From Klebsormidium nitens (lineage: Eukaryota; Plantae; Klebsormidiophyceae): a stretch of 32,457 nt of DNA. Below are positions 11,601 to 23,588 of this stretch, in pieces (within the stretch, counting starts at the first letter, position 1; each line of letters opens with the position of its first letter). Under the pieces are notes generated by a model, which worked only from the letters and a program-made list of their open reading frames with translations, was not told the DNA's origin and searched no databases. The stretch covers positions 1 to 32,457 of the forward strand of contig DF237749.1 in NCBI GenBank assembly GCA_000708835.1. Reading direction: 5' to 3'. The position numbers and the translations under genes were made by a program.

Positions 11601-12609
11601 CGATCTGAGCTTTCTTAGCAGGGCTGTGTTTGGAGTCGGGGTGTCAGAAAAGTTTTCACTGTGGTATACCATCCGTTTGAGCGATCCACTCAGTAAGTTG
11701 GAACAAAAGAGCAAGAGTCCGAGCACTCGAACCTGGATGAACTGTCTTTCCTTTCTAGGGAAAAAAGTAACGAGTACACGGCGCGCTTGTAAGAGACATT
11801 CTTTGATCGATAGGTGGCGTGTCCCGTGACTGTATAGTTTAAAAGGTGCGACTATACCACCTTGGGGGTAGCCTTTGTTGGTCAAGAATCAGGAGATCTG
11901 AGAAAGTTCGACATTCGGGATATCTGACATAACCTGACATCTGACATGACTGGGGTTCAGGGGATGCCAGCTGAAAGGTCACATTCTACATACCAGGAAG
12001 GGGGCCCCTTCTGCTTCACGTCCCAGGAACTTCATTGACAACTTTTGGCCTCCCCATGACTTTCTATGCTCTTCGCACTGGGAAGAGGTCGTAGCAAGAT
12101 GACATTTGACGCAAAGGGTCGCGCTCCTCAGCGTTGCATTGAAAAGTTACTCTTAAGTACCTGTGTCTCGATTCAAACCAGGTTTTTGATGCATGTAAGG
12201 AAAAGCGGAGGAGGGGGCTCACTTCCGCATACGCACAGACCCCCTGGTGCTGCTTCCACTCGCTCGCGCGCACCGCCCCCTCCTCACACCCCACGTTCCC
12301 GCACTTCACGAGCGCCCCCCGTAGCTCCGCCGCCAGGCCCCCATTCGGAGTTACCCCCCCTTCCGAGCCGCAGTCCGCTCTGCAAATTGGACATGTCTTT
12401 GGGGGGGGAATCGGGGTCGCAACATGGGGGGAATGCATCTGCCGGTGCGTCTCGTGCGCGAACGCGAGCGTTATGCACGTTCGGCAGAAGGAGTGGCGGC
12501 AGGGGGTGGAGTGGGGGTCCTCCATGATCTCGAGGCACAGGGGGCACACCCAGTGGTCTTTGGGAGTCTTGAGGACGCCGGGGGGGGAGGGGGGACTATT
12601 GGCAGCCAT
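5628..12609 (-). CDS. RING-HC E3 ligase-like protein with two TRAF-type zinc fingers, a coiled coil and a multi-pass membrane C-terminal region (about 527 aa, 9 core exons)
   Basis: Exons (minus) 12609-12223, 11549-11358, 10742-10611, 9853-9643, 8836-8717, 7925-7783, 7329-7231, 6625-6461, 5762-5628 are phase-compatible and GC3-rich. RING: CPLCLEIMEDPHSTPCRHSFCRTC...CPIC. TRAF-type fingers: CGNVGCEEGAVRASEWKQHQGVC and CSQQPLGCHWRGVRHQLGAHELRC. Several hydrophobic segments follow. A symmetric extra exon at 8476-8345 is possible. Confidence 0.72.
6008..6495 (-). repeat. Four degenerate tandem copies of the exon 8 3' end plus donor junction in the last intron
   Basis: Original (+ strand) cttacctcgagcagcacaaaggggatccagaggctggcgta at 6456. 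Copies at 6351, 6250, 6116 and about 6015, plus an internal 31-bp duplication at 6184-6245. Confidence 0.8.
8814..9125 (-). repeat. Three ~135-140-bp tandem units containing the exon 5 acceptor junction
   Basis: caccc...ccaggatgcctgcacaaggaaa recurs at about 8814, 8948 and 9090, with the shared flank gcctcgaatacggcttct. Confidence 0.85.
9505..9590 (-). repeat. Degenerate duplicate of the exon 4 3' end plus donor (possible 75-nt cassette exon 9585-9511)
   Basis: ctcacctcccagcgctacctcaatgcccatcccgtt matches ctcacctcccagcgccactccgatgcccatcccgtt at 9638. Confidence 0.8.
9975..10145 (-). repeat. Degenerate duplicates of the exon 4 acceptor junction
   Basis: tgggcagcatgaagcagacggcctgg at about 9991 matches tgggcagcatgaagcacacggcctgg at about 9832. 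A weaker third copy lies at about 10117-10145. Confidence 0.75.
10821..10864. repeat. 10-bp tandem repeat (acctgttcta) x4.4
   Basis: Read directly from the sequence. Confidence 0.95.
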
Positions 12610-13871
12610 TTTTCAAGGGGGGTTGGGAGGGGGAGGGGGAGGGCGGCTCTGCAATCGGTGATATTGTGAACTAGGGCTGCATGAGTTTTGGGGTCGTGAA
12701 GCGTTGTGCTGCAATGGGTGACGCACTATGCTCTCACTGCGTGCCTCGGGGCTGCCTTGCTTTGATTGGTGGTCAGTCCAAAAGCTGGCAATGTTTGACA
12801 GGATTCGGAGCCTGGCTACCGGACTTGATGGAGGGTTGTTGTGGCGCAGCGCATTGAGCACGAGGCTGGAAACAAATGATGCTTGGCCCCTAAAAACCTG
12901 ATAGCGCTCAATTTGCTCCAGTCGGTCGCATCGTCCCCCAAACGTGGAACAAGCAGCTACCAATTGCCCACAGTCACGCCACAGCCCGTCCCTGCATGTC
13001 AAAATATGAGATTCTTTCACAAGCAACTGCTGTGAGCTTACAATCAAGCTGCTGCCCAATTCGGTATCCAGTAAAACCTCCTCCCCTGCTGGCTACGAAA
13101 ATCATTGCAATTCTCCTGTCAACTTTTCTACTGACGGGCCGCTTTCTAGCAAAAACCGTACACCTTTCCGATCACCAACATGACTCCTTCCTTCCGAAGT
13201 AGTGGCCCACCCTATCCCTCTGAATTTAAGTTAGCACCCAGCAGCGCCAAGATGGGAAGACTTGCTCAGACATACTCATACTCCGAGCTTGCTGCTTCCG
13301 CCCTTTCTATAGTATTTCAGGCTAGCTGACAATTTTCTACTAGCAGGACAAAAGCTAGCGTTACAATAGTAGCTAAACGGAAGGCGCGGGAGGTAACGGC
13401 ATAGGCAGGACCATCCGGCCGGATGTATTTAACTGCTCCTAGCCTTCTGGGTCTTAACGATTTCCCGGGGCTTCAACGATCGCCGGGAATACAACCGACC
13501 AAGGCAACGACAGCAAAAGTTCCAACAGAACGTGTAACGCTGCATAAAAAGATAATAAACCGCAGGTGATGTCACTCAAGAGGGATGAATGGAGCTGCGA
13601 ACTCGGTCAAATCTGAAAGATCAGGGAGGCAGCTAGGAAGGCAGGGAGGCAGGGGCAGCTCCTCGCTAACTTCGCAGCAGAGCCGCTCAGGTGGTTTCTC
13701 TCTGTCATATCTTCTGAGGTTGCTGCCTTCAAGACGCATTGAGGAGCATGCCTCTCAGCTCGCAAAAGAACCTCTTGGTGGCGCCGACTGCAAGTGCTTC
13801 CGAACTACCACCCTTCAAAGTCCAGAGATCGTCCCAAACTTGGTGGTAGAGATCACGTCAGTTTTGACAGG
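12610..13871. promoter_or_regulatory. Divergent intergenic/promoter region between the RING gene and ELP2
   Basis: Head-to-head start codons at 12609 (-) and 13872 (+). No specific sites were assigned. Confidence 0.5.
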
Positions 13872-16800
13872 ATGGACGTTCGATTGGAACATGTGGGGGT
13901 GGGGTGCAACCGGGTGGTCAATGCCGCATCTTGGGGCCCCTCAGGCCTTGTCGCATTTGGCGCACACAATGCGGTGGCTCTATACAGTCCCGAGGTGAAG
14001 CTAACAACTCGATCGCCACTGCTTCTATGCAAATCATGTGTAGCTGGAGTTGCAATCAGTAATTATGCTCGTCACAGATAGATGCACCACCATTCAAAGT
14101 CTCCACTGATGCATCGAGTGCGAAGAGGCTATTTCGCTTCCACCATTTGTAAAACCCTCCGGGAAGTATGATAGACCGGAAACTGTACTTTCTTTTGTGC
14201 GTGTGGTGTTACAAAGCTAGGAGTACTCTCTCCTCTTTTTGACCTTCATATGTTGTAGCTCAACGCAGCTTCTCAGGTGCTTGCAGTCAATTATTCTTTG
14301 CCCCCTTTGGTGCCTTTGTTTTCCCTACGCGGATTTCTCATGCAGAATTCCCTGCTCATTCAGCCTAGTCTATCTATTATGAGCTGTTATGGTTCGCCCT
14401 TGAGTTAGAGTCTAATGAGAAATTCTATTGAGACCACGTGTCCTCATTGAAGTTGTTGAACGCTCAACAACGAACCAGAAGCATCGCTTCAATACCCATC
14501 TTTCATCTGCGATACAGGATGTGAGGGTTCTTACGACACTGCCAGGACACTCCGACCGCGTCAACTGCACCGAATGGCTGCCAAGGCACTCCGCCGGCCT
14601 TCCCACAAACCATGCAAACCACCCAGTAAACCCGCCTGGAAACCATCCTGCAAACCCGGCCCCAAGCCCCCTCCCCCTCATATTGGCCTCCGGAGATGCA
14701 TCCGGCACAATCTTCCTTTGGGGACAGCAAAGCACATCCCGCCAGGACCAACCTCGTGATACATCGGAACCCAACTTCGTATCTGTAGCACACATTCCAA
14801 CTGCGCACTCTGGGGCCGTCACGTGCTTAGTCAGTCACGTTCGTACTGTTACCCCGTCGGTTCATCCAGCGAGAATTATAGAGGCCCTGTTGGTTTCAAC
14901 CTCGTCGGACGGTACAGTTAAGATCTGGGGCATCAGCAAGGGAGGGGGATCCGGACAGGGCCTGGTAGAGACCACGTGTGTGCAGACCATCTCGGTGGGA
15001 CCGAAGGTGATGATGTCAGCGGCGATGACGGCGCTTTCTGAGAGGGGGTCCAGACTGCTGTTGGCGCTTGGGGGCTTGGACAATGCAGTGCACTTGTACA
15101 CCAGCTCAGAGCACCTTCAGGTGGGTGGGGCCTTAGTAAAATAGTGATTACCGTACCGATTGTCCGGTTGTGCAGATTTTTGCCCAATGATTAGTTTTGT
15201 ATCTCATGGGCTTTGGGCAGCTTCATCTATCCATTTACTTTGTCTTTTTACGGGGCAAAATGATCTGCAAATCTTTAATTGAATTTTATTTTCAAATTTT
15301 TGGAAGTCAAAGAATGTTTGATTGTTGCCCAACCGGACAATTGGTACGGTAGTTTGTATCTGAATCGTGACTCTGATCACTTCTTTTGTTGGGTTGTTCA
15401 AAGACTAGCACATCCGGTTCTGCTATTTTATCCTTCAGGAAAGGGGTAAGAGTAATCACATTCCCTGGTCTAAGTTGTTATGTATTGCTCGCACAGGCTG
15501 TCTGGAGTAAGGATCAAAAAGTTTGGGCGTTTAGTATGCTTTTCTCTTGGGATGGGGCCACGTTATCAGGAGAGAGGCCCTGAAGTTGGCGGTTTTTGAA
15601 AAGTTGCTTGAGGCAATGGTCGAAACCGACAATGAGAGGACCATACAGTATGTATCCACGGAGTGGTTTCGCTCAATCCCAAAACGGTCAACGAAACTTC
15701 TGTGGTGTTCCTCGTGCATAAGATCAGAATTTTCTCGTGACAGATGCTTGAAACTTCCTGACTTGCCTCTGCAGTTCTCAAAGGTCTGCTCTCTGACCGG
15801 TCACCAAGACTGGGTGCGCTCCCTCGCCTTCGCTCCCCGTCCGAACCCATCTGCATCCAACCCTCCTCCGCTGCTCTTGGCAAGCGGATCTCAGGATCGC
15901 AACGTGCGCATCTGGCGCATCGCGCCCCGGAAGTCGACCTCCACGTCAGTTTTGACTACGTCTACCGAACAAGAACCGATACCCTCCACTAGCTCGACCG
16001 GAAACGGCGAATCTAACTTGCTTTCTCCGAGCACGGAGGAAGGCAACCTCGCGCTTGGCAGCAGAGTAAGCAAACAAGCAAACCCGGCGAAACCGGAAAT
16101 AAACAGGTCGAATAGCGACCCCAAAGACGAGGCCCCGGATTTGGCGGGGTTCATGAGCCTGCTGCACATGTATGCGGCGGGCCCTGTTTTCCGGGTGGGC
16201 GGCCGCGTGTGGGAGGCGTCCCTGGAGTCGCTCCTCATTGGCCACGAGGACTGGGTGCACTCGGTGCGCTGGGCGCCGCCACCTGTCGCTTCCGTACTGC
16301 CAAGTGGCACCTCCGGAGGCGCTTCTCCCAGCTCAAATGCCACAGGGAGCAATGGTCTGATTCAAAATGGTGACGCAAGTTCATTAGAGAGAAGCGCAGA
16401 GGCAGCGGAAAGGAGAGTGAGGGAAAGCGCTGCGCGGTCGTCGCTCCTGTCGGCATCCATGGACCGTACGATGATGGTCTGGCGGCCGGACGCGCGCACG
16501 GGGCTCTGGACGTCCGAGGTGACCGTCGGCGAACTGGGGGTGTCCAACCTCGGCTTTTACACCGGGCTGTGGTCCCCCCGGGGGGATGCGATTCTGGCGC
16601 ACGGTTACACGGGCTCATTTCACTTGTGGGGTCGGGAAGTTCTGGAGTCTGGGGGGGAAGAGTGGCGCCCCCGGCTGGCTGTGTCAGGCCACGTGGGGGC
16701 CGTTTCGGACTGTGAATGGGATCGGGGGGGGCGGTATCTGCTGAGCGTGAGCCAAGATCAGACGGCAAGAATACAAGCGTGCTGGCAGTGGGGGGGCCGG

Positions 16801-18946
16801 GACGCGGGCTCGAAGTCAGAGGAGAAAGGGAAAAAAACGCCCGAAAGTGATGCAGCTGGGGGGAAAGAAACACCTGTGAGTTTGGGGGGGCGGAGAGCTG
16901 GTGGCCGCGCTTCGTGGCACGAAATTGCGCGGCCGCAGGTGCACGGGCATGACATCCACTGCTGCGCGTTCGCCGGCCCGGCCGCTGACGTCAGCACAAG
17001 CACCGCTGACGTCGGCGTGTACGTCAGCGGGTCCGAGGAGAAGGTTGCGCGGGTGTTCCAGGCGCCTGAGGCCTTTCTGCAGACGCTTTCGCAGGGGGCC
17101 GGCCTAGAGGATCCTCCGTCCGGTGCACTCGGAGCAGGGGCCGAAAGTAGCGCTAAGGGTTCCACCACAGAGAAGATTCTCGGCGCAAACATGTCAGCGT
17201 TGGGGCTGTCTCAAAAGCCGATTTATGCGGCCGGGGGGGCGAACAACGGGGACAAGAACGGGGGGGAGATGGGGGGCTTGGGGGGAGAGGCGTTTGACAC
17301 GGTGCCTGAGGCGGCCCCGAAAGTGTTGGAGGAACCGCCGCTTGAAGAGCATCTGGCGCAGAACACGCTGTGGCCGGAAGTGCGGAAGCTGTACGGGCAC
17401 GGCAACGAGCTGTGGTGCATGGCCGGTGAGAAGCTAGGGTTTTGGGTCTCAGGATATAAAGGCTTAGGTTCGTACTGTTCTGGGGGATTCGTTTCGATTT
17501 CCGGCACCACAAGAAAGGTGATGTCTCTGACTGATGACGTGCCAGGCGGTTGGGAAGTGATGTTTCCACATTTTGACGATCCATTTTTTCCCGGAATCAG
17601 TGCGTATAGTTCCAGGATCTTGAGCTGCAAATGCTAGGCTGTCAAAGGGGATTGACTTACCGGCAACCTTTTTGACACTTCAAGCAAACGCAATCGACTG
17701 GCCGCTGAAGTCGATATTACTCCACACCAAGTGCATGAAAAGCTCGTCGAAGCTGGAGTGCTTGCCCTCTCGAAGCTTGAGATTAGAAGGAGGACGAGCG
17801 GGACAGGCAGTACGATGGAAGGCTTCTGCTGACGTATTCTACTTCCAACGAACACGAACCTGACCATCTAGGCCCACCGACTCGTCTTCATAATCTTGCT
17901 TCCCCAAGTTTACAAATCTTTCGACATGTCTGCTAACGGCCTTGCTTTCCATCCCAGGCGATCATTCGGGCAGAATCCTAGCGACCGCCTCTAAGGCCCA
18001 GTCCGCGGCTGCTGCCGCCATCTGGCTGTGGGACACCGCCACGTGGCAGCCTGTGGGCCAGCTGTCGGCTCACCAGCTCACGGTCACCCAGCTTGAGTTC
18101 TCGGGCGACGACCGGTTCCTGCTGGCGGTCTCCAGGGACCGCCACGTGTCGCTTTGGGAGCGCACGGGTTCGGGGTCTGTTGGAAGCGCAGCCGGCACGG
18201 GACAAAACGGCGTCGAGCCTGGTTCGAAGGATCCTCCTGGGAAAAGCGACGGAAATCCTGTGCGGAAACGCGACGAAGAGAGTGTGCCGAGCACGAGTTC
18301 GGTGGAAACCTCTTCCCGGGGGGCAATTCAAGAGCTGATTCAAGAGCTGGCGGATGGAGTGGGAAGGAACGAGCGGGATGATAAAGAGGAGGAAGGCTTG
18401 GGGAGCTGGATCAAGGAAGGGTCGTACTTGGACCGCCGGACGGTGGTACCGTCGTCCGAAACCGGTCCGCCGTACCGGTTGGTGTTCAAAGTCGAGGCGC
18501 ACAAGCGGATCGTGTGGGCAGGAACTTGGGCGCCCGACGGGCGCACCTTCGCGACCGGTTCGCGCGACAAGCTCGTCAAGATCTGGGCGGTTTCGTACGG
18601 TGCGGACGGTCGTGCGACGGGCGTCCGGGAGGTAACGAGGCTCCCGGCTTTCAGGGAGAGCGTTACGGCGCTGGCGTGGGGGGCGAGGAACGTGCTGGCG
18701 GTGGGGCTGGAAAATGGCGGCCTGGAGCTGTGGCAGGGTGAACCGGGCGGGTTAAGCTTGACCAGGCGGTTTGACGCGGGGCTCTGCCACGTGGCAGCGG
18801 TACATAGGATCAGGTGGAAGAGCGGGTATGCCGATAGATGGGCGGGTGACAGTAGACAAGCGGAGGCCAGCCAAAGCGAGAGGCTTCAGTTGGCCGCGTG
18901 CGGTGCAGACCATTCAGTGCGCATCTTCTCGATAGACTTGAGATGA
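13872..18946 (+). CDS. ELP2: Elongator complex protein 2 (WD40), 4 exons
   Basis: Exons 13872-13994, 14518-15120, 15775-17425, 17958-18946. Motifs GCNRVVNAASW, LTGHQDWVRSLAF, LIGHEDWVHSVRW, HEIARPQVHGHDI, SGSEEKVARVF, PPLEEHLAQNTLWPEVRKLYGHGNEL and HKRIVWAGTW are characteristic of ELP2. Confidence 0.93.
15149..15351. mobile_element. MITE, Tc1/mariner/pogo-type (TA-flanked), in ELP2 intron 2
   Basis: 15149-15170 taccgtaccgattgtccggttg pairs with 15330-15351 caaccggacaattggtacggta (22 bp, 1 mismatch). TA at both outer ends, AT-rich interior, no ORF. Confidence 0.7.
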
Positions 18947-19188
18947 AAATCATTGTTGGATGTACGTATCCCTGTCTCGGCGAGAAAGGACGAGTCTGTA
19001 AGGCCTGAAGTGTTTGGAAAGTAAGTACTGCTGCCCTCTGCTTGAAGTGCATGCAGTCACGTACCTACATGTTGCTTTCTGTCATGGTGGTTCTCTACCT
19101 GGCAGCTATGTAGCTGCGATGTGGTCTTTGAGTTTCCTGTATGTGGCAGTCTGCGAGCTTGAGCTTTTGCCGTCCAAGAGAAACAATC

Positions 19189-19944: not shown

Positions 19945-20533
19945 CTGATTGCGGCGGGAGAACCATGCTTTACAAACCGTTACACAATCATATCGCGTTC
20001 TGCTATAGATTAGGCATGCTTTGAACAATCAAATCTGCCATGACAAAGCTTGACGCGTTTGCCACATGGCCGATGCAGCATTCAATATATTTAACCAAAG
20101 ACGTCGAGGCAGTGACCGCACCGTAACATATGTCGCGCTAGCTCGTGGAAGTGTATCTTATTCGGCCACGCATTCAGAACACATGTATGCATCTACGCCA
20201 CCATGTAGAAGCTGGTATGCTGCAGCCGCGGCAACGACTGCCTGGTCCTTCCGCTTCCACTATACGTGCTCGCGTTTTGTAAGCTCTGGCTTAGCGCATA
20301 ATGATCATTGAGGTACTAGCAACTGTGTGCGGCGGCCGGACAGCATTGTAATGGCTCGCTTAACGGTACGGCGCTTCTATCGGTCATATCGAATCATAGT
20401 TATCAACTGAGAACATCAGGTGCTAAAATATTAGGGCCCTACTTATGGCATACAAAGCACTCTGAGGAAGTATCAGCAACGCATGGCATGTCTTGCCCAG
20501 CAATTTGCTCAACAGCCTATTACTTGAAGAGTC

Positions 20534-22715
20534 TCATCTGTCGGCGAAGACGCTTGCGAGGAGCCCGATCTGCCCCCCCGGTACTCTGCCAATCAGACGT
20601 TGGATCGACTTTTCAAGGTCCGTCAGCGACTCGTCCATGTCGAGCTTCTGCCTAATGAGGTCTTTGGCATGCGCCACGCTGTCCACACTGAGCGCCGCCA
20701 CGCGTCCGTCGAACAGCAAGAGCGCGGCTCCGCAGTCGTTTGTAGTCCACGTGTTGCTATCGAACAGCAGGTGGTGCTTGGTGCTGCTAACCCTCAACCC
20801 AACCGCTTTCATCACGGCCGGTGACTTATTCCACCCCCCTGGGACACGAGGCAGCTGAGAGTCGTCGACAAACGTGAACAGGACCAGATCATTCCCCTCG
20901 AGAAACGGTTGATATCCGGTTAGGATCTCCAGAAAGTCGGGGGCAAGTTCGTCTACAGGCTCCAAGATCGCGAAGTCCAGTCTCGTGTCTCTTTCTAGCA
21001 CTTTGAGTTCCATGGTCCTCTCAAGCGATGGTACTTGCACCAAGACAGTATCCCCTTGCCTAAACCGTGAAGGTAAGGCGTGGTTACACGTGACCGCTCG
21101 GTTTGGCTTGAAGAAGAACCCTGCCCCGTCGAGTGGCTCCAGGGAACCGCTTGACGATGCAGGGAACTGGAACATGGCATGGTTGACTTTCTTCACGACC
21201 GCTGTTGGACAAAGGCGGTGAGCTGCAGAAGGCGGAAGAACCTGACTCAATCAGATGCTTAGCCTTTTCAGTGCAAAAAAGCCTTCAATGGAGCCTTCCT
21301 TCTCAGCAACGTAAATCAGCGGATTCAATGTGCGAATTCTCTATCAGTTTGTAACTTCATATCCGCAGCCAGAATTACTTTTCGTATCCTTAATTCAGGT
21401 AGGTGCAGCAAAATGCGTCAGACGGTGAAAAAGAATGCACAGGTGACGTCGGTCGGTCACCATAGGAAGGCCTTACCGTTCTTTTCACTCTCAGCCAAAA
21501 CGGCTCTCCAAACTTCAAGCTGCTTGACCATATGCTTTTTGCTGACAAGATGCCCCACAAGAAGGCAGGCTGTGACAGCAGCAACGACCTGCGCGAAATC
21601 ATGCAATTGCTCCCTGAGCCAACAAGATGCCAAAAGCCTACTGGCTTCACGTGCCCATAATTTTGGTCAGGATCTGCAGGGATGCGCCTTAGAAACTCCA
21701 AAAAATAAAATGATACGGTGGATCTGTAGAAGAAGGACTTCCGCGCTGAGGCGTGAAAGTAAAAATGCTCAAAAGAGATTTGAAGCAAAGCTTAGGCTTG
21801 GTTAGATGATTCACTGGTGACTAAAACCAGCTAAGATCATCACGACTTACCAACGAGGTGCCAAGCAGTAGCTCAGGCGATCGGCCGTTGAACTCTGCGA
21901 AATCACGAAGAAGGTGCAATTTATAAATACTCAGAAAGCCGTTGTAGCAGATCAGAGGCAGTGAGGCAAGTTCATGAAGCAAGTGATTACAAAAAGGATA
22001 TTGGCCTGCTCTCTCGTTTCAATTGCAATCTACTACCCAACATGGTTTGACGGAACCAATCGCCCTGAACAAAAAAGCAAAGCAGACTCGTTCAAAATTG
22101 CCATTTGCGCGCTGAATTCCCTCATTGAACGAGGTAAAAGAGATGACAGAACAAGTCTCACTGGGTGCGTTGTGATTCTCTTCATTTCGTTGCAGGCTGT
22201 ATTCCAAATAGCAGCTGTCAGCACTCACGGCGTCCATTTGCTTGCTCTGCAAGATGCGCGTTGGTTTCCTCAATTTCAGTCGGCCTTCTAAGTTACAAAG
22301 AACTCTTCAATTAACGTCTCAGATTGCTTGCATGAAAGATTGTTGTAACGAATTTGAAAACCATGGTTTTGCATACTGCATAGAAGGCTCTAATGAAGAA
22401 GCAGGCGATGCACTCCTTTCGTCCTGAATCAAGCAGACGTGGCTCAGAGTGATCAGACTAGGAAAGTACCTGGCAAAAGAGCAACTGCGTCTTCAGGACC
22501 AGGTCAACTGGAATTTCAGCAGCTTTGCAAATCCAACTGCGCCCGTTGATCCTGGCGCATGTGACTTCCCGTATGATGCTAGCATACTCACAATCTTCTA
22601 AGCAGATAAGCTGAGGTCCCTGTAAGCGCAGGGGACCTTCTGTTACTGATGCTGTGGCCACTTCTCGGCCCAGGAGAATCAGAAAAAGGAAGAATATCAG
22701 TCGAGACCACCTCAT
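20534..22715 (-). CDS. Predicted type I membrane protein: signal peptide + SARAF/DUF1183-like ectodomain + TM + cytosolic trypsin-fold protease with Cys nucleophile (391 aa, 5 exons)
   Basis: Exons 22715-22470, 22246-22162, 21894-21851, 21588-21477, 21222-20534 total 1176 nt, in frame with GT-AG junctions. Signal peptide MRWSRLIFFLFLILLGREVATA; six-Cys domain QLIC..DC..VTC..WICKA..FCQ..DSCYLEYSL; TM LLLGTSLVVAAVTACLLVGHLVS-KKH; protease motifs AVTCNHAL, LDFAIL, NDCGAALL. The protease exon is secure; its linkage to the upstream exons is inferred. Confidence 0.65.
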
Positions 22716-23588
22716 CTTGCTTAAATGCATTCTTGTTGGCAGCAATCTAGGTGTTTGTTCGTATCTAGACACCTAACTCTCCAGGCTTTACTTAAGTGAA
22801 GCTTTTCCTGCTTAGTACTACCCGAACCGGCATCTATAGCAAGAGCACAGGGGTCAGCCCCGAAGAAAAATGAGAGCGCTCTTCTCTGCAGAAAGCAATT
22901 CTGTAGACTATCTGAATTCTGTCAGTGTAGACTCTCTGAGTCTCAAGCAGATAAGGTTGCGGTCGCCAGGCGCGCGCGCGGCCGGCCTCGCGTTGGAGGT
23001 TTGAAGGTTTGGCCGCCAGTACGCCCGCACGTCAAGATCGACACTGCGGCGGCATGCGCGCGATAGAACACTCAGTCCAATCTCTGCTGATCATTGCCAT
23101 GCAATGCTCAATTTGACATCTTGAAGAATGTTTCGGTTTCATCTATGCGCCATGACAGCAAAAGGGGTGCAAAACGATTATAGTTGTGCGGAAAATCCTA
23201 TTGCTCATAAGGAGGGACAACGAACAAGTTTGATTTCAAGGGACAACCTCCCTCAGAGCGCTGGGCTGGCTGACGATATCTTTTCAGCTGACCGCCGTAC
23301 TAGCTACTCAAAAGCCCAAGGCAGAAGCTTTCGTCCGGCACCGGAAAGTTTACAATCATTCCAATCCTGTAGTAGTAGACCGACGAGTAGGTAATTACAG
23401 GATCGCATGCCGGCACCCACTCCCCATGATGCATGATAACCAGCCTGATGGCCGACTTCTCCGCCTCGCGAAATGATATTTATCTCAACAAAGCCTTAAT
23501 TTCGAAAGGGAAGCCCGACTCCGCCGCAATCAGCAACATGTGAAGCAGGGAAATTCGTGAAATATAAATGCTCGCGTGATCAAGGTCG

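Follow-up and report, generated by a model that had tools for sequence, protein, structure and literature searches.

The window considered here is a stretch of 32,457 nucleotides of the streptophyte alga Klebsormidium nitens (assembly GCA_000708835.1, contig DF237749.1, positions 1 to 32,457), the minus strand of which carries, between 22715 and 20534, a five-exon gene for a protein of 391 amino acids. In the order of the predicted protein, a signal peptide, an ectodomain with six cysteines and a transmembrane helix are followed by a trypsin-fold domain that is related to the trypsin domains of Crinkler proteins. The reading favoured here, which is held with moderate confidence, is that of a type I membrane-tethered Crinkler-family trypsin-fold protein that would act as an endopeptidase through His210 and Cys326. 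What is new is the architecture, the protease family being already known.

A five-exon gene and its transcripts

The exons, on the minus strand, are 22715-22470, 22246-22162, 21894-21851, 21588-21477 and 21222-20534. They join in frame across introns that are all of the GT..AG type, giving a coding sequence of 1176 nucleotides (nt), i.e., 391 codons and a stop; exon 5 begins at 21222 with the two letters CT, which finish the split codon 163. The in-frame union of the five exons, put forward in the initial annotation, has been corroborated by Logan contigs of public sequencing runs placed on 20200-23100. In run X3, a single contig of 1555 nt extends from 20343 to 22903 and omits exactly 21223-21476, 21589-21850, 21895-22161 and 22247-22469, which are all four predicted introns, so that all four junctions are present in it. 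Three of the four junctions can be found in run X1, among them those at 22246/22470 and 21894/22162, and exon fragments are contributed by X5 and X6, from two further studies. Since these intron-less joints lie at GT..AG sites, the X runs indicate complementary DNA (cDNA). This is one real, expressed gene with one spliced mRNA in K. nitens. In the 5' untranslated region (UTR), stops in frame upstream of 22772 shut the reading frame, and an optional in-frame ATG at 22730, which is not kept in the orthologue described below, would add five residues (MHLSK).

Regarding public annotation, the entry KFL_008000040 of Klebsormidium nitens (247 amino acids, named 'Trypsin family protein' in UniRef) is 100% identical to the exon-5 translation and already uses intron 4. 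Its start is the Met of KKH-M-VKQ, which is residue 145 (not 146) of the 391-residue protein, and it is therefore without the signal peptide, the six-Cys ectodomain and the transmembrane helix. When exon 5, exon 1 and the sequence P0001 served as queries in word-based searches, only P0001 and P0002 were returned, and no public protein covering exons 1-3 was found. The five-exon model corrects this truncated public model: residues 1-144, which comprise the complete ectodomain and the transmembrane helix, are absent from the protein databases searched.

An orthologue of the gene is present in another Klebsormidium (L001, Logan SRR23617307), in a syntenic region that is collinear with the window over ~19 kb. 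Between the two species the exons are 74-84% identical and the introns 53-55% identical when indels are counted, and all splice sites, exon phases and exon lengths are kept bar one 3-nt indel. The orthologue is an intact protein of 392 amino acids, in which the six ectodomain Cys, the transmembrane helix and the protease His and Cys are all present. Exon 2 shows 80% identity without indels, and the eight differences in exon 3 are made up of five synonymous changes and three that fall within two replaced codons. The ratio of nonsynonymous to synonymous substitution rates (dN/dS) amounts to 0.50 in the ectodomain, 0.36 in the stalk and transmembrane helix and 0.25 in the protease. In exon 4, the 19 codons that precede Met145 (126-144) retain the acceptor site, the frame and the hydrophobic character in L001; as they have no ATG of their own and are yet conserved, they must be translated from upstream. 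Within intron 2, a block of ~55 nt (22048-22103) is identical to L001 at 34/40 positions, far above other intron sequence, and might act in splicing or give rise to a small RNA.

Intron 3 is retained in part of the transcript material. A 730-nt contig of X1 covers exons 1 to 3 in spliced form and runs on from there into intron 3, up to 21684. The first 43 nt of this intron show unusual conservation, with at least 33/40 nt identical to L001, and the stop falls at the same (tenth) intron codon. As read from the frame, intron 3 retention may yield a secreted ectodomain of 134 amino acids without the transmembrane helix (125 from exons 1-3 and nine intronic), and the retained form, perhaps a conserved isoform, may be either a regulated product or an unspliced precursor. 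Given its occurrence in X1, the full-length protein may be accompanied by such a shorter product. Transcripts ending in intron 3 had been named in the initial annotation as evidence that would speak against the fusion; retention of this kind is indeed found in X1, whereas the full-length join in X3 opposes a gene that would end there. The features of the gene are collected in Table 1.

Table 1. Features of the minus-strand gene, in the order of the transcript, with window positions
Feature	Position	Strand	Basis
5' UTR	22716..22903	-	contig starts 22903 (X3), 22901 (X1), 22885 (X5)
Upstream open reading frame, 13 codons, MPVRVVLSRKSFT	22795-22833, ATG at 22833	-	within 5' UTR, main reading frame in another frame
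Predicted signal peptide, residues 1-22	22650..22715	-	hydropathy scan and sequence reading
Exon 1, mature part, residues 23-82, first five of six ectodomain Cys	22470..22649	-	alignment with L016 ectodomain
Exon 2, 85 nt, end of ectodomain with sixth Cys and C-x-LEY-x-L	22162..22246	-	X1 and X3 junctions
Exon 3, 44 nt, stalk and first half of transmembrane helix	21851..21894	-	X3 junction to exon 4
First part of intron 3, conserved; frame closed by a stop after 9 codons in K. nitens and L001	21808..21850	-	X1 contig, L001 comparison
Exon 4, second half of transmembrane helix, KKH, Met145, juxtamembrane helix	21477..21588	-	X3 junctions; conserved acceptor
Exon 5 from first whole codon, trypsin-fold domain and two C-terminal helices, residues 164-391	20537..21220	-	
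His210, TCNHAL	21080-21082	-	family catalytic His column
Asp245, LDFAIL	20975-20977	-	family catalytic Asp column
Cys326, NDCGAAL	20732-20734	-	family nucleophile column
Ser341, at the putative S1-pocket His position of the family	20687-20689	-	
Stop codon (20534-20536) and 3' UTR	20343..20536	-	X3 contig end at 20343

Predicted topology and the six-cysteine ectodomain

In a hydropathy scan of the protein, strongly hydrophobic 19-mers occur only in the N-terminal signal peptide and at about residues 116-143. Residues 1-22 look like a cleavable signal peptide, in which a basic N-terminus precedes the hydrophobic core LIFFLFLILLG and positions -3 and -1 are occupied by small residues (A-T-A before S23). 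The second segment, with the helix put at residues 117-141, agrees with the initial proposal of a transmembrane helix that is formed across the exon 3/4 junction and followed by KKH. A type I single-pass layout is predicted from this order, with signal peptide, ectodomain, transmembrane helix and cytosolic domain, and the C-terminal domain would be cytosolic whether the first segment is cleaved or kept. The free thiol of a Cys nucleophile would fit a reducing compartment.

The ectodomain (residues 23-116) contains Cys at positions 38, 42, 53, 63, 81 and 94, and the count of six, which had also been noted initially, holds for the L001 orthologue as well (6/6 conserved). They are part of a domain of about 90 amino acids, probably with three disulfides. 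Relatives of this ectodomain were not detected in protein collections or JGI metagenomes, with the sole exception of the environmental contig L016 (JGI 3300030743, Ga0265461_10027096, 605-1607). A peptide-pattern scan of metagenomes for ectodomain relatives or spliced cDNA returned nothing, nine metagenome matches to a pattern of the exon 1/2 junction were all judged to be due to chance, and a hidden Markov model of the ectodomain detected no additional copy in L001-L018 or elsewhere in the window.

L016 harbors a six-Cys ectodomain, a transmembrane helix and a protease in the same order as K. nitens. A hydrophobic leader, the six-Cys domain (with C-L-G-G-C and ending in C-V-LEY-A-L) and the transmembrane helix lie in a single open frame, and the protease, P0008, comes directly after. 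The joined ectodomains of K. nitens and L001 can be aligned with that of L016 from end to end with the six Cys matched (z 5.4 and 9.7, 0/2000 shuffles). L016 has no in-frame start ATG, its frame is broken twice (with a shift near 1020-1070), its linker is shortened and Pro occupies the nucleophile position; the frame breaks and short linker make a decayed copy or a poor assembly possible. The common layout nevertheless shows that the combination of ectodomain, transmembrane helix and protease is older than Klebsormidium. The initial claim that this architecture is without described precedent stands as far as public protein sets are concerned, none of which shows the layout.

The proposed kinship of the ectodomain with SARAF has not fared as well, as searches of Pfam and of the Protein Data Bank (PDB) by sequence and profile returned no SARAF. 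In Pfam, no match to SARAF was obtained at E up to 10 with the exon 1 piece, the exon 2 piece or the complete L016 ectodomain. In the PDB, no SARAF chain (6O2U, luminal domain) was retrieved by phmmer or by two profiles, in searches where the HMMER filters hide E > ~2, and the top profile matches, ICAM-1 and MTF2 (E 0.4-1.2), are attributable to chance similarity of Cys-rich sequences. Feature searches of the ESM Atlas for the ectodomain came back blank, and an AlphaFold2 (AF2) model of the 60-residue exon-1 piece alone is of low confidence, with a predicted local distance difference test (pLDDT) of 39.7. With regard to topology, the signal peptide, the transmembrane helix ~20 residues past the LEY motif and the KKH beyond it are SARAF-like. 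The motifs P-Q-L-x-C, W-x-C and S-C-x-LEY-x-L seem to follow one another in the same order and at similar distances as in SARAF, which serves as a lead and not as a test.

The trypsin-fold domain and its family

The C-terminal domain scores 28.7-28.9 bits (E 2e-6) with Pfam Trypsin_2 (PF13365), slightly more than the cut-off of 27.6; 63/64 family members match this model. An AF2 model of the domain, built from a 64-sequence family alignment, has a pLDDT of 92.3 and a predicted template modelling score (pTM) of 0.89, and it leads from an N-terminal helix through two beta-barrels to a pair of C-terminal helices. The nearest structures in Foldseek are HtrA1, DegS, MucD and Rv3671c (probability 1.0, template modelling (TM) score 0.5-0.6, identity 13-19%). 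The ESM Atlas entry of the public sequence (pTM 0.81) has structural neighbours that are all trypsin-like, with TM scores of 0.62-0.67 to Trypsin_2 clusters, and a PDB search by sequence alone with the protease gave no match. Pfam, AF2, Foldseek and the ESM Atlas are thus in accord with the chymotrypsin-type fold that had been suggested for the cytosolic half of the protein.

The protease belongs to a small eukaryotic family, for which only 87 matches at E <=1e-3 were returned when 1.84 billion representatives were searched exhaustively with HMMER. Most members lie on contigs from metagenomes or Logan, in genes that are split in a eukaryote-like manner; P0028 is a Phytophthora lilii protein. 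In P0019 (E 1.1e-12) and P0074 (E 2.1e-4), which are placed in the same tree as the K. nitens domain, a Pfam Crinkler domain (PF20147) precedes Trypsin_2 (PF13365), and the link to Crinkler-associated trypsin domains, named in the initial annotation, is confirmed by these two proteins. A Crinkler review counts trypsin as one of the peptidase domains that Zhang et al. 2016 defined at the C-terminus (PMC5289972). The Crinkler header itself (PF20147; LxLFLAK / HVLVxxP) was not found in the K. nitens protein by Pfam searches with exon 1 and exon 2.

Other leaders can be found ahead of this domain. An N-terminal transmembrane helix together with a coiled coil is present in P0017, P0037, P0049, P0052 and P0068, and the genomic contig L011 (Logan ERR10900175, 1562-2773; P0010) shows a transmembrane exon that begins at an acceptor site, a coiled coil, an intron and a protease exon, with Arg at the catalytic His. 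The transmembrane leaders of these five members and of L011 indicate that membrane tethering of this protease domain is recurrent. In a FastTree phylogeny of the domain, the two Klebsormidium sequences fall together with P0005, P0008 and P0010, the L016 protease (P0008) being sister to the pair.

The family consensus comprises the motifs T-x-x-H-N, L-D-x-A-x-L, G-D-S-G-x-A-L and G-x-H-x-x-x-V-N. Alignment to the family columns has upheld the trypsin-fold His, Asp and nucleophile motifs that were read initially, with His210 and Asp245 in columns that are at least 90% conserved across the family. The nucleophile column holds Ser in 59/72 and Cys in 6/72 aligned members, and the N-D-C-G of K. nitens departs from G-D-S-G. 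A plausible reading of these residues is that of an active Cys-His enzyme with altered specificity.

As for the surroundings, a weak tblastn match of the protease at 12443-12613 is antisense to a RING-finger open reading frame (ORF) and was judged to be chance. This C3HC4 RING-finger ORF (12064-12609, minus strand; Pfam E 1e-7) is 91% identical in L001. Downstream of the protease gene and convergent with it lies, on the plus strand at about 13870-18950, a large WD40-repeat gene made up of several long ORFs (Pfam E down to 5e-19, 77-85% conserved in L001), which are probably one multi-exon gene. No functional link of the WD40 gene or of the RING-finger ORF to the protease gene was seen. At 1001-2000 the G+C content falls to 0.25 compared with about 0.5 elsewhere in the window, and long overlapping ORFs on both strands at 681-1523 suggest a low-complexity or repeat tract.

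Competing readings and comparison with known systems

In the favoured reading, a cleavable signal peptide would put the six-Cys domain in the lumen or outside the cell, and one transmembrane helix would leave the C-terminal 228 amino acids, with the trypsin-fold domain, facing the cytosol. A receptor-like leader takes the place of the usual Crinkler header and would fix the domain at the cytosolic membrane face, where catalysis by His210 and Cys326, with Asp245 possibly dispensable, would cut cytosolic or membrane-proximal substrates. It can be hypothesized that the ectodomain governs the location and oligomeric state of the protein and that intron 3 retention provides a secreted form consisting of the ectodomain only. 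By analogy with Crinkler-type domains, a role in conflict, stress, immune or death signalling may be conjectured, and a dimerisation- or Ca-store-triggered control of the protease by the ectodomain is speculation.

Several observations weigh against the tethered endopeptidase, some of them concerning the transcripts and others the active site. The 'RNA' label of the transcript runs is a guess, contigs assembled from short words do not prove that exons 1 and 5 lie on one molecule, and X1 is without the exon 3/4 junction and retains intron 3. The locus could accordingly be imagined to make mainly two products, one a short six-Cys protein for secretion, read from exons 1-3 when intron 3 is kept, the other a soluble cytosolic protease begun at Met145, with the fusion as a minor form. 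The start of KFL_008000040, the state of intron 3 in X1 and the conservation of both the intron 3 stop and Met145 in the orthologue would suit such an arrangement, whereas the X3 contig links all five exons, none of the placed contigs begins within intron 3 or exon 4, codons 126-144 are read from upstream, and the transmembrane helix is incomplete without exon 4; two separate products are therefore considered improbable. Regarding the active site, Asn replaces the oxyanion-loop Gly before the Asp of GDSG, and the near-invariant His of GxH, which by comparison with 3C and Glu-specific enzymes would be an S1-pocket residue, and the near-invariant Asn of VN have become Ser341 and Ala. The L001 orthologue shares these changes and, in addition, has Gly at the catalytic Asp, and in the nearest clade (P0005, P0008 and P0010) the His or the nucleophile is lost. 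The altered residues, together with the Gly of the orthologue, make activity uncertain, and the losses in K. nitens, the orthologue and the clade fit a drift towards a pseudo-protease. In that event the gene and the topology would be the same and the trypsin-fold domain would be a membrane-tethered binding or scaffold module that cuts nothing, an explanation that appears rather unlikely, though it deserves to be taken seriously. It is opposed by the presence of His210 and Cys326 in both Klebsormidium species, by the constraint that a dN/dS of 0.25 implies for the protease and by the recurrence of the Ser-to-Cys swap in otherwise intact family members. Cys-His dyads, moreover, suffice in some trypsin-fold cysteine proteases, namely 3C-like enzymes.

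The nature of the ectodomain bears on where the protein would act. It is possible, and is entertained here as a tentative idea that falls somewhat short of an even chance, that this part is a true SARAF-fold domain in a reduced form, in which case the signal peptide, luminal domain and transmembrane helix would stem from a SARAF-like protein of the endoplasmic reticulum (ER) and the whole protein would be located in the ER membrane. The luminal domain of SARAF is a ten-stranded beta-sandwich with three disulfides that forms a dimer by a swap of its last two strands (PMC8391525). Six conserved Cys would fit these three disulfides, and the succession of signal peptide, domain and transmembrane helix is common to both; the Pfam, PDB and atlas searches gave no SARAF match, however, and nothing here corresponds to the ~25 residues by which the first Cys is preceded in SARAF. 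A more elaborate scheme, in which a SARAF-fold sensor in the ER lumen or outside the cell would control a cytosolic Crinkler-type Cys/His protease through its oligomeric or redox state, with the intron-retention isoform as a soluble decoy, must be regarded as a long shot.

With regard to its significance, the tethered Crinkler-family protein shows that a trypsin domain known mainly as a pathogen-effector payload is also part of a membrane protein that a free-living streptophyte alga encodes for itself. The theme of exchangeable leaders on a constant payload is thereby widened to include one of receptor-like type. On a small scale, the natural replacement of Ser by Cys within a GDSG family illustrates nucleophile exchange. 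If the protein is active and controlled across the membrane, it could be a simple system for transmembrane protease control. A receptor protease, if real, would represent a class of single-pass receptors with proteolysis instead of phosphorylation as output, in an algal lineage sister to land plants, and could serve as a cell-death or stress switch.

Among known systems, the Crinkler trypsin proteins (P0019, P0074 and Phytophthora lilii GMF11917.1) share with the K. nitens protein a homologous domain with a helix before the barrel and two C-terminal helices, the motifs T-x-x-H-N, L-D-x-A-x-L and G-D-S-G-x-A-L, and the principle of an exchangeable N-terminal leader ahead of a constant C-terminal enzymatic domain. 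They differ in that the K. nitens leader consists of a signal peptide, a six-Cys ectodomain and a transmembrane helix without a Crinkler header, that its nucleophile is Cys and not Ser, that the S1 His is lost and that the host is a free-living streptophyte alga. SARAF/TMEM66 (PF06682, 6O2U) has the same type I layout with a small luminal or extracellular six-Cys domain, but the domain of K. nitens is shorter and a cytosolic protease takes the place of the STIM1-binding tail. HtrA, DegS and MucD (S1C) exhibit the same double beta-barrel, and DegS is membrane-anchored too; in contrast, identity is 13-19%, no PDZ domain is present in the K. nitens protein, and these enzymes are periplasmic or secretory with a Ser nucleophile. 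Trypsin fold, Cys nucleophile and cytosolic action are held in common with the picornain 3C-type enzymes, Peptidase_C3 giving a weak match in one family member and the atlas feature neighbours including 3C and NIa clusters. Unlike the K. nitens domain, which has no S1 His and whose Cys arose within a GDSG family, these are viral polyprotein enzymes with GxCG and an S1 His. The animal type II transmembrane serine proteases, such as matriptase and hepsin, are single-pass proteins in which the trypsin-fold domain is extracellular; they are alike in crossing the membrane once and in their fold, whereas their topology is opposite and there is no relation beyond the fold.

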